Below, in pieces: positions 3,804 to 7,509 of a stretch of DNA of 28,434 bases. A program made the translations under genes and the position numbers. Origin of the DNA: Macrostomum lignano (lineage: Eukaryota); contig NIVC01005021.1 of assembly GCA_002269645.1 (NCBI GenBank), forward strand, positions 1 to 28,434, written 5' to 3'. The first letter of the stretch is position 1, and the number at the start of each line of letters is the position of its first letter. Below the pieces are notes generated by a model. It saw only the letters and a program-made list of their open reading frames with translations, was not told the DNA's origin and did no database searches.

Positions 3804-4833
3804 ATGCGCCGGAATGACCCAGATGAAGAGCTCTTTCAGGCGATTGAAGCAGACGATTTGCAAGCCGTGGAGAACTTCATTGCCAGTGGGAGGAGTGTCG
3901 ACATGATTCTCACTTGGAGAGAAAATGAGTTGACACCGCTGATGTGGGTATGTTTATTGAGCAGAATCGGCATCTTAGTGAGGCTGATTCGAGAGAGCGT
4001 CGATGTTAACAAACAGAACAGGGGTAGATACTCGCCATTGTTTTTTGCATGTCTACTGGGCCATAGTGAGGCTGTCGATTTACTAATCCAAGCACGAGCC
4101 GACGTCAATCTTCAAGAGAAGGTCAAAGATGAGTCACCTCTCTACATTGCATCAATGCAAGGCCACTATGATGTTGTAGATCGACTCCTCAAGGCACAAG
4201 CCGACGTCAATCTTCCACGAAACAATGGCGAGTCACCTCTCTACATTGCATCAGCGCGAGGCCAACATGAGATAGTGGATCTACACCTCAGAGCAGGAGC
4301 CAACGTCAATCTTCAACGAAACAGTGGCCAGTCACCTCTCTACTTTGCATCACAAAATGGCCACCATGAGGTAGTAGATCGACTCCTCATAGCGCGAGCC
4401 GACGTCAGTCTTCAACGAAACACTGGCGAGTCACCTCTCTACGTTGCATCAGCGCAAGGCCACCATGAGGTTGTCGATCGACTCCTCAAAGCAGGAGCCG
4501 ACGTCAATCATCGACTCATCACTGGCTCGTCACCTCTCTACATTGCATCACAAATGGCCACAATGAGGTACTAGATAGGCTCCTCAGAGCACGAGCTGAC
4601 GTCAATGTTCGACTCATCACTGGCGAGTCACCACTCTACACTGCCGCTCAAAACGACCACCATCAGGTGGTTGAGTCGCTTCTCAATGCCTCCGCTCTCG
4701 AAGGCTCTCGAGAGTCACTTCAATCCGCTCTCAATCGTGCCATCGAGTTCAGCAGTGAGCGATCTGCGCAAGTTCTGCACCGTGCGCTGACGGGCGATGA
4801 GCGACCGAATTCGGCCGCAGAAACTGCAGAGAG
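3804..4833 (+). CDS. Ankyrin-repeat cGAS-like (Mab-21) protein, exon 1: about 8 ankyrin repeats plus caps; 1-nt frame break at 4552-4554
   Basis: ATG at 3804 (MRRNDPDEELF...) followed by repeated SPLYIASxxGHxEVVDRLLxAxADVN. At 4552 CAAATGGC lacks one A relative to CAAAATGGC in the sister repeat at about 4352. Restoring it gives ...QNGHNEVLDRLLRARADVNVRLITGESPLYTAAQNDHHQVVESLL...AAETAE and a phase-2 GTGAGC donor at 4834. Confidence 0.85.
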
Positions 4834-5183
4834 GTGAGCGCTGCTGAGTTGCTGCTTGTTATAGGGGTGTGAAACACTGCTGCAGGTTTTGTGGTCGGTG
4901 AAACTTGGTTCTTTATACTTGTGACCAGCATTTTAATCAATCTAGTGTCCCTGCATATCCATTAGTCAGGTGTCTGTATGGACCTTCAGGTACCTGCTAT
5001 TTTGAAGTCGCCATTTCGAACAGTGAGATTTGAAGATCACTCGGCTGCTAGATGATGATGAAATACAAAAATCTGGCGCGTAGGATGTCCTTCATGAGCC
5101 TTTTGAGAATTCAAGCTTGATCAGATTTTCCATGCCACTCTGGGGTATAAATTGATTATGCATCTGATCTCAGCCAATCACAG
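4834..5183 (+). other. Intron 1 (phase 2, GT-AG, 350 bp)
   Basis: AG|GTGAGC donor. CAG at 5181-5183 is the nearby acceptor whose phase joins exon 1 to the NTase frame. Confidence 0.7.
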
Positions 5184-5563
5184 TGAATCACAGCAGCCCC
5201 CACTCCTCCCATCATCCAGAGCCGCTCCCAGCGACAATGACCTCAGCCAGCAGCTGCACTCAGCGCTGACCCGCTCGGGATTCGTGGACTCCAGAGCCGC
5301 CTTGCAGAGCGCCACGGCTGATGTCCTGCAGGATGTTCTGAGGAGAAGACTGAAGTATGTTGGCCTTTTAGTGGTGGGCAGCGTCTCGGAGGGCTGGGGC
5401 AACAGCCTGGTCACTCTGGACGGCAGAACTGGCATCGAGTCCGACATTGACGTGATTTTGCTACTTGTAGGAAGCACGATTCACCCCAGGGATCTGTGCG
5501 AGTGCAAAGGAGTGACGAAAAAAGTGGAATACCGAAACGGACACGTCTTGAGTCCTGGATACG
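5184..5563 (+). CDS. Exon 2: N-terminal part of the Mab-21/cGAS-like nucleotidyltransferase domain
   Basis: LLVVGSVSEGWGNSL...IESDIDV matches the GS...D-h-D motif of the pol-beta-superfamily cGAS/Mab-21 NTases; phase-1 donor TACG|GTGAGA at 5564. Confidence 0.85.
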
Positions 5564-6050
5564 GTGAGAGACAGCCCGTCTGTCTGTCTGTCTGTCTGTC
5601 TGTCTGTCTGTCTGTCTGTCTGTCTGTCTGTCTGTCTGTCTGTCTGTCTGTCTGTCTGTCTGTCTGCTGTCTGTCTGTCTGTCTGTCTATCTGCCTGTGT
5701 GTCTATCTGTCTGTCTGTCTGTCTGTCTGTTTGTCTGTCTGTCTGTCTGTCTGTCTGTCTGTTTGTCTGTCTGTCTGTCTGTTTGTCTTAATGTCTGTCT
5801 GTCCGTCTGTCAATCTTTCGATTTTCGAAGAAGAGCCTCGGTGGGACTCGATTAAGACGTGAAAGCAGATTATTGATGATGACCTAAATTAGCCGGTTAC
5901 CTAGCAAATGCAGTTGTCCACAGAGATAAAATATATTTTTTACGAGTTGCTGTATCGATTAACTGTAGTTTTGTTGCTTGCGGTGAATGTTTTTCCATCA
6001 GAAAGCACTCTGCCTTCATTACTCATCTCTTCGTCTTCCGTGCATTGCAG
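5564..6050 (+). other. Intron 2 (phase 1, GT-AG, 487 bp) containing a (TGTC)n microsatellite
   Basis: GTGAGA donor; pyrimidine-rich TCTCTTCGTCTTCCGTGCATTGCAG acceptor; phases match. Confidence 0.85.
5578..5812. repeat. (TGTC)n tetranucleotide microsatellite
   Basis: Direct inspection. Confidence 0.98.
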
Positions 6051-7509
6051 CATCCAGGCCAGCAGTTCAACTCAGAGGCTCGATCCTGAGACCAGCAGTG
6101 GATGTTGTGATCGCCCGCCGCCTCTGTCGCTACCCGCCCATCGCGCCGCTGCTTGACAACCGAGTCCCTGACTCAAACATCCCCCAGTCAGTGCTGCAGT
6201 CGCTCCAGCATCTCCTCACCTCTGCTTCATCGCTCTGTCACGTGGTGCACGCAGCGCCTCCCGGAAAAGGAGGCCAGCAGCTCCGAGTGAGCACCAGCTT
6301 CCTGGAGAGGCGGCTGCTGCGGAGTCTCACCACTCTGCAGGGCCAGCTGTTCGTCACGCTCAAGTGGCTGCTGAAGAAGGCCGTCCGACACAACGGCTTC
6401 AAGTCGTATCACGCAAAGACCATCGCGTTCCGAATGCTCGAGCAGACACCGGCTGAGCAGTGGAACGACGCTCGGAATCTCGTGAGTCTCACCAGACGCT
6501 CGCTGCAGATGCTAGAGCGACTGCAGATCAGGCAGACCTGACGCCAGGATCATGGACCACTTCTTCCTTGGCGATGCCGCTGTGTACCTGAGAGGCGTGG
6601 ACACCACATCAGCTGAGAAGGCGACTCGAGCGTTGAATAAGGCAGCCGATGCAGTGAGAGAGGCGATCGATAGGCTGCCTGAGCTGCTGCATGAGTTCGA
6701 GCACAGCCTGCGACCCGTCACCGAATCGGGCCGATTCCACTTCCACCCGTTCCTCATTCTGCCACTGTTAAACCTAGCTCGAGTGTCAGCATCGAAGACC
6801 TGTGAGTACCACGAGATCTACAGCATCGTGAGAGAGTCGCTTCTCGGAGTGTCAGACGGAGACCGAAGCCCAGAGTCCCGACAGCGTCTCTCGGAGCTGA
6901 TCGGCAAGCTGCCAGACTGCGCCTTCTCAACGCGAGAGTCTCTCAGAGCGCTGAGCTGCCTGAAGTTCGGCGACCGAGAGGCTTCAGCGAGAGTCGTGAG
7001 CGACTGCAGGCCGTTCAGCGCGAGCAGAGGCATCGACTGGTCCGCTGAGAGGTCGGCGAGTGAGGCGACTGCGGACTTGGTGTGGCGGCACCTGAGGAGC
7101 CGAGACTCCGCGTGGAAGTTCTGCTTCGACTTCGACATTAACAAACGGCCTGAGCTTCATATCAGAAATTGGATTGTCGCAGAGTTCGTTCCGCTCGAGC
7201 TGGAAAACTACGACAATTACTTCTTCGTGAACTTCGACGTTCTGCTTTGTGCGCTCCGCTTTGATTGATCTGATTGGAGCAGGAGACTCCATTGCTCAAG
7301 ACTGGATCCGGGATGTGGTGCACAGGGTAGATACGGATGAGCAGGAGCTGATTGTGGCTGCAGTTTACTGTCAAGATTTGGAGATGCTGCGACAGCTGCG
7401 CAGGAGAAGCTCCAGGATGCTCGGCTACGTGCCTCAGTGGCTGGAGAACAAAGTGGAAGAGCTGGAAGAGCGGCTGCAGGGTCTGCGGCCACCGAGGTCA
7501 AAAATATAG
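6051..7509 (+). CDS. Exon 3: rest of the Mab-21/cGAS-like domain plus a helical C-terminal extension; frame breaks near 6517 and 7265
   Basis: [14 protein letters not shown] (third catalytic Asp strand), [13 protein letters not shown] (cf. cGAS WRLSFSHIEK), GFKSYHAKT (cf. cGAS SYHVKT) and MDHFFL. The supplied ORFs 5987-6541, 6552-7268 and 7249-7509 join by two +1 shifts; stop TAG ends at 7509. Confidence 0.8.

Follow-up and report, generated by a model that had tools for sequence, protein, structure and literature searches.

A frameshifted ankyrin-repeat cGAS-like gene of Macrostomum lignano, probably a recent pseudogene within a large lineage-specific family

Most animal cGAS-like receptors (cGLRs) are stand-alone proteins. 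In the survey of Li et al. 2023 (PMC9980059), they make up 87% of animal cGLRs, and some others carry tetratricopeptide-repeat (TPR) or ankyrin-repeat (ANK) modules (Fig. 1C and Table S2 of that paper). Among the fused forms are ANK- and death-domain-fused cGLRs of the coral Stylophora and, in Table S2, four proteins of the flatworm Macrostomum lignano listed with Ank_2 (PAA67649.1, PAA58690.1, PAA68676.1 and PAA86972.1). Five M. lignano cGLRs were purified for the activity screen of that study (Table S3, samples 89-93), and the constructs of at least PAA86972.1 and PAA68676.1, both with Ank_2 in Table S2, begin past the ANK region. Here we describe a gene of this type in a 28.4-kb stretch of M. 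lignano DNA (contig NIVC01005021.1, called the window in the following), in which an ankyrin-repeat exon is joined to exons for a nucleotidyltransferase (NTase) of the cGAS/Mab-21 type. The ANK-cGLR architecture is real but not new. The copy in the window, as judged from its sequence, is probably a recently inactivated paralog, i.e., a pseudogene, of a large ANK-cGLR family specific to M. lignano.

Since Li et al. list M. lignano ANK-cGLRs, the architecture had already been catalogued in the same species. Besides the organism, the window gene shares with these proteins the order of N-terminal ANK and cGLR modules and the motifs GSxxEGWGNSL, MxHFF and LPDCA. It differs in belonging to another subfamily and in being frameshifted. 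With the five screened constructs, its C-terminal NTase part shares 30-37% identity. Its closest relatives are the GenBank models PAA67560.1 (P0002) and PAA65921.1 (P0003), of 871 aa each, neither of which was found among the accessions in those tables of Li et al. that were at hand. The genomic locus of P0002, on GenBank contig NIVC01001474.1, is referred to as L001.

Comparison with better characterized enzymes places the family as follows. Vertebrate cGAS (PDB 6mjw, 6ct9 and 4k8v) has the same NTase fold (Foldseek expectation value (E) 2e-5, TM-target about 0.5), the GS loop and the spacing of the Asp/Glu triad, together with a WRLSFS strand corresponding to RVSTSF of the family and a SYHVKT helix corresponding to SYHAKT. 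In contrast, identity to cGAS is about 15%, the zinc thumb is missing at the cGAS position, the disordered basic tail of cGAS is replaced by an N-terminal ANK array, and a C-terminal domain of 270 aa is added. Stylophora pistillata likewise has an expanded invertebrate cGLR family including ANK fusions, and its Sp-cGLR1 (PDB 8gjy) matches structurally with 21% identity over 207 columns; for corals, however, several STINGs and demonstrated products are on record, and M. lignano is not known to have either. Mab21L1, Mab21L2 and MB21D2 share the Mab-21 fold and the Mab-21_C helix bundle but have no ANK repeats, and Mab21L1/2/3 are described by Li et al. as being without a predicted functional active site, which the M. 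lignano family keeps. With the protein-activated CD-NTases of bacterial CBASS defence, the family has in common the idea of a cGAS-like synthase under the control of a protein module instead of nucleic acid. Beyond the NTase superfamily there is no shared sequence or architecture, and this parallel is conceptual only.

GT-AG introns, microsatellites and pieces of retroelements mark the window as eukaryotic. Its ANK-cGLR gene consists of the following parts, given in the repaired reading frame:

3804-4833, plus strand: exon 1, with the start codon and codons for 8 ankyrin repeats plus a short helical linker; phase 2 at its end (AG + A = Arg)
4834-5219, plus strand: intron 1 (GT...AG); a homologous intron is present in L001
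5220-5563, plus strand: exon 2, coding for the N-terminal spine helix and the NTase N-lobe
5374-5382, 5377-5394 and 5440-5454, plus strand: exon 2 motifs VGS, GSVSEG and SDIDV (metal-binding acids), respectively
5564-6050, plus strand: intron 2, largely a (CTGT)n microsatellite (about 5575-5800)
6051-6671, plus strand: first part of exon 3, coding for the rest of the Mab-21/cGLR core
6098-6115, 6284-6310, 6404-6421 and 6552-6566, plus strand: exon 3 motifs VDVVIA (third catalytic Asp), RVSTSFLER, SYHAKT and MDHFF, respectively
6672-7506, plus strand: second part of exon 3, coding for a mainly helical C-terminal domain of about 270 aa
7507-7509, plus strand: stop codon TAG

All splice sites are canonical and phase-compatible (AG/GTGAGC at 4833/4834, CCAG/A at 5219/5220, ACG/GTGAGA at 5563/5564 and TGCAG/CA at 6050/6051), and the first part of exon 3 also carries a C..YP..A motif. 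In the exon 1 translation, Pfam detected Ank (E 2.3e-51, 8 repeat stretches) and Ank_2 (E 6e-51), and the repeats follow in tandem with the typical length of 33 residues. The repaired coding sequence amounts to about 943 aa; apart from three indels it has no in-frame stops, and every catalytic motif is retained. A first-pass annotation of the window had described about 8 ankyrin repeats joined to NTase motifs by phase-compatible splicing, with all three metal-binding acids apparently intact and about 950 aa after repair of three breaks. The splice sites in the window and the exon junction of P0002 bear out this description, three frame interruptions were indeed found, and all motifs listed there are present. 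The helical C-terminal domain had been missed in that annotation.

The three interruptions of the reading frame are as follows:

4552-4554, plus strand: frame break 1, a 1-bp deletion (AAA, against AAAA in all paralogous repeats of L001 and the window)
between 6513 and 6514, plus strand: frame break 2, a 2-bp deletion (GCT--AGAGC, against GCTTGAGAGC in the paralog), within QMLE/SDCRSG
about 7261-7264, plus strand: frame break 3, a 4-bp insertion (CGCT[TTGA]TTGATC, against CGCTTCGATC in the paralog), which makes a TGA stop at 7266-7268

With indels of -1, -2 and +4 bp, the window copy does not form an uninterrupted open reading frame (ORF). Reading from the ATG past break 1 meets a stop at 4572-4574 and covers some 256 codons, all of them ANK sequence, and hence no NTase can be produced from this copy. 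When the C-terminal 618 residues served as query, no GenBank coding model was more than 90% identical to it. The best match was the UniProt model P0001 (identity 95%, query coverage 98%). Three residues (G/S, D/E and V/A) separate P0001 from the window translation, so that it represents another, 99.5%-identical copy; nevertheless, it begins right after break 1 and crosses breaks 2 and 3 by tiny artificial introns, of which the one at break 3 skips CALRFD..LIGA. Furthermore, the 2-bp deletion recurs in a reverse-oriented partial copy in L001 (2571-2461), in a stretch of 111 bp with 100% identity. The P0001 model and the recurring deletion speak for real indels and against assembly noise.

Several points weigh against a pseudogene, and those that concern the enzyme itself are taken up below together with its fold. 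The M. lignano assemblies are based on PacBio reads (PMC5730564) and thus prone to indel errors, and break 1 is a 1-bp loss within an A-run. For exon 3, the pairwise ratio of nonsynonymous to synonymous substitution rates (dN/dS) against an intact paralog was 0.46, with dS 0.15, which by itself is no sign of lost constraint. Taken with the otherwise open reading frame and the complete set of catalytic motifs, this would fit an uninterrupted, working gene in the animal, with the three frame breaks being errors of assembly or consensus. We consider such errors unlikely, although they keep some weight. Breaks 2 and 3 lie outside homopolymers, the deletion at break 2 is repeated in a different copy on another contig, NIVC01001474.1, and P0001, as an independent model, avoids the same three sites. 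The dN/dS value was finally dropped as evidence in either direction, since it cannot separate a recent pseudogene from an immune gene under relaxed constraint. We regard the window copy as probably recently inactivated, and turn to its family for the properties of the enzyme.

The first-pass annotation had called the protein a fusion of ANK repeats with an NTase of the cGAS/Mab-21 type and had proposed to check this with Pfam, with AlphaFold and Foldseek, and by family size. Pfam gave a divided answer. Beside the strong Ank match, the repaired C-terminal 618 aa matched Mab-21_C only (E 4.5e-4), with 20.7 bits below the gathering score of 24.1, and PF03281 matched neither the window copy nor any of 11 paralogs. 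All 11 of these paralogs matched Mab-21_C (lowest E 1.1e-5). Because Pfam alone could not settle the fold, a family profile and a structure model were needed. The profile of the 11 paralogs (alignment A1, identity down to 38%) retrieved mouse and human cGAS from the PDB with E 1.2e-5. Aligned by hhalign to human cGAS (E 1.7e-4), it placed LRVSTSFLE over WRLSFSHIE and KSYHAKT over SSYHVKT; the human sequence used agrees with that in Table S3 of Li et al. An AlphaFold2 (AF2) model of the C-terminal 601 residues of P0002, which is 87.6% identical to the window across the modelled region (BLASTP), had a predicted local distance difference test score (pLDDT) of 79.9 and a predicted template modelling score (pTM) of 0.79. 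When this model was compared with the PDB by Foldseek, the top 50 matches were all cGAS or coral Sp-cGLR1, with E from 2e-5, probability 1.00, TM-target of about 0.5 and alignments of 360-420 columns. These alignments span both lobes, and homology of the NTase N-lobe was detectable by structure only. Together with transcript-based paralog models, the cGAS profile match and the structural matches uphold the earlier call.

In the window, the active site reads V-V-G-S, x20, D-I-D-V, x52, V-D-V. Li et al. give the cGLR active-site rule as h[QT]GS-[X8-20]-[DE]h[DE]h-[X50-90]-h[DE]h; the window follows it with Val for Gln/Thr before GS as the sole deviation, and agrees in full with the relaxed rule of their final selection (G[S/G] loop and [E/D]h[E/D]-X50-90-[E/D]). 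Residues G53, S54, S74, D75, D77 and D134 (trimmed P0002 numbering) are invariant throughout A1. Homology extends over the NTase core as well as the C-terminal helix bundle, and the P0002 model predicts structural homology to known cGLRs and CD-NTases. By sequence and predicted structure, the family thus has the three properties, active site, two-part homology and fold, by which Li et al. define cGLRs.

Exon 2 also contains a His-x4-Cys-x-Cys...Asn-Gly-His pattern (HPRDLCEC...NGH, window 5480-5545), in an insertion that follows the DxD strand and precedes the third Asp. In the 11 paralogs, H88, C93, C95 and H110 (P0002 C-terminal numbering) are invariant or almost so. From its sequence, the pattern may be a zinc-binding knuckle, placed elsewhere than the zinc thumb of cGAS.

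Members of the Mab-21 superfamily need not be enzymes, and the family could consist of non-catalytic scaffolds comparable to Mab21L1/2 or MiD49/51, in which the ANK repeats serve ordinary protein-protein interactions. In agreement with this, the five M. lignano constructs in the screen of Li et al. have no reported activity: the Note column of Table S3, which marks the 15 active enzymes, is blank for samples 89-93. The missing PF03281 match and the Val before GS in place of the Gln/Thr of the strict motif point the same way, and flatworms have been reported to lack cGAS and STING, a statement made on the basis of Schistosoma (PMC4117786). Residues of this kind, however, are typically lost in non-catalytic Mab-21 proteins, whereas here the GS loop and the three acidic residues have stayed invariant in paralogs diverged to 38% identity. 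Moreover, all four NTase motifs are kept in 50 of 115 family sequences, although many of the models are fragmentary. The conserved catalytic triad favours catalysis over a role like that of Mab21L proteins, and we regard the scaffold explanation as quite improbable.

The GenBank annotation of M. lignano was built on a genome-guided RNA-seq transcriptome (PMC5730564), and in the GenBank models P0002, P0003, P0007 and P0009 ANK and NTase lie in a single ORF. In L001, the junction of exons 1 and 2 of P0002 (CACAG/GTGAGC ... CATCCAG/ACCTGCT) coincides exactly in position with the one deduced for the window. Three or more ANK-like repeats occur in 30 of the 50 family sequences that keep the full set of four NTase motifs. 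The join is hence supported by transcripts in close paralogs, not directly for the window locus. That the ANK exon and the NTase exons are two adjacent, separate genes that are never joined deserves next to no credence: both modules are present in more than 20 paralog models, transcript-derived P0002 has the identical phase-2 GT-AG junction, and homologous models show no plausible context for a start codon within exon 2. In L001, the genomic exon 1 (10001-11515, about 1.5 kb) has more ANK repeats than the 871 aa of P0002 explain. The annotated P0002 seems to omit part of this near-identical repeat array, and ANK copy numbers in database models may consequently be underestimates.

The domain of about 270 aa that follows the Mab-21 core has NFDxLL and EDADEQEL motifs and is conserved in the family, as seen from the invariant columns of a second alignment (A2). 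It had no match in Pfam and, with the profile, no sequence match in the PDB. Modelled alone by AF2 (pLDDT 76.5), it gave no significant Foldseek match (best E 0.31); matches to TPR-like helical repeats at this level were rejected as too weak. In the cluster search described below, the mollusc matches cover the Mab-21 core only. The C-terminal domain thus looks Macrostomum-specific.

The 36 proteins that a word-index search found with the C-terminal 618 residues are all of Macrostomum lignano; among them, P0002 is 86% and P0003 84% identical to the query. Searched exhaustively with a profile, 1.84 billion cluster representatives yielded 710 matches with E<=1e-3. Of these, 86 had E<1e-30 and represent 50%-identity clusters. 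Ten matches were looked up: the eight strong ones were all from M. lignano wherever the source names an organism, and the two weak ones sampled (E about 1e-12) were a mollusc Mab-21 protein (Mercenaria) and one ENA protein. The ANK-cGLR family is a large expansion specific to the M. lignano lineage, and the redundancy known for the DV1 genome (PMC5730564) makes it appear larger than it is.

Two further M. lignano models, P0092 (PAA59752.1, 1099 aa) and P0108 (PAA93319.1, 2111 aa), combine ANK repeats and the cGLR-like domain (Mab-21_C match) with a caspase domain at the C-terminus (Peptidase_C14; E 3e-25 and 3e-27, respectively). In P0092, the GS..DxD motif was not found by a regular-expression search. 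These models could represent sensor-synthase-protease fusions or else fused neighbouring genes.

Local duplication of the family, as suspected in the first-pass annotation, holds only as far as decayed fragments are concerned. The window has one further copy:

25421-24042, minus strand: second ANK copy, a decayed exon 1 fragment with several frameshifts (tblastn, three-frame translation)

This fragment is 89-95% identical to L001 (blastn) and is interrupted by an unrelated insertion of about 650 bp (about 24357-25005). In a tblastn search of the window, no NTase exons were found beside it; a second full gene copy was therefore rejected as a candidate. In L001, 1429-2730 (reverse) is a partial copy of exon 3 with the 2-bp deletion of the window, and 22601-22771 is a short 5' fragment. 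ANK-cGLR loci appear to gather gene fragments.

The rest of the window contains an otopetrin-like proton-channel gene (17590-19802, minus strand) in two consecutive ORFs (Pfam Otopetrin, E 2.3e-10 and 4.9e-5), of which the downstream one runs into a coding-looking tandem repeat (HHDAA...). Retroelement remains lie at 21244-23034 (minus), 13112-13564 (plus) and 15720-16241 (minus). The first of these, flanked by the decayed ANK fragment and the otopetrin gene, has an RVT_1 reverse-transcriptase fragment (E 1.8e-14) after a 433-aa ORF without Pfam match; the others are a weaker RVT_1 piece and an RT_RNaseH piece. Minisatellite or microsatellite arrays occupy 819-1405, 2323-2775, 5575-5800, 9046-10612, 16301-16777, 17515-18189, 20406-21254, 25647-26306 and 26998-27994. 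The window is unusually rich in such arrays, which give rise to long spurious ORFs in several frames, and those at 2334-2725 and 20418-21254 are also present in L001.

Intact members of the family consist of an N-terminal ankyrin solenoid, an NTase of the cGAS/Mab-21 fold and the family-specific helical domain of about 270 aa, and selection has conserved the GS loop and the Asp-x-Asp...Asp triad of the NTase. Once activated, the NTase would make a nucleotide second messenger. The ANK array, the C-terminal domain or both could provide recognition of a ligand or partner, or else autoinhibition, and the nucleotide signal would be read by some receptor. Depending on the paralog, the NTase core has an isoelectric point (pI) between 6.3 and 9.7, and this variation does not indicate a uniform nucleic-acid ligand. 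Within the ANK repeats, per-position entropy is highest at the beta-turn positions 1, 2, 3 and 5, followed by 17 and 18. Such variability fits a binding surface yet is generic to ANK repeats, and was rejected as evidence for a variable sensor. A query with the ligand-binding domain of human STING returned deuterostome proteins only, in a word-index search that is too insensitive for invertebrates. M. lignano is absent from Table S5 of Li et al. (PMC9980059) in the version of this table available here.

The invariant triad, the unmatched fold of the C-terminal domain and the caspase-adding models of relatives lead us to a tentative proposal, which we hold to be rather doubtful at present. The M. 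lignano ANK-cGLRs might form a flatworm-specific immune second-messenger system that senses proteins or other non-nucleic-acid ligands, is gated by the ANK array, the C-terminal domain or both, and is read by a receptor other than canonical STING. If this were true, its origin would lie in a phylum to which the loss of cGAS-STING is commonly ascribed. To our knowledge, there is no ANK-fused cGLR with a known ligand, product or receptor. Taken alone, the window locus matters little, being a decayed paralog of a catalogued family; its interest is low to moderate, that of the family moderate. M. lignano is a transgenic animal amenable to RNA interference, and intact paralogs, e.g., PAA67560.1, would be a reasonable entry for asking whether repeat arrays can do the sensing for a cGAS-like enzyme.

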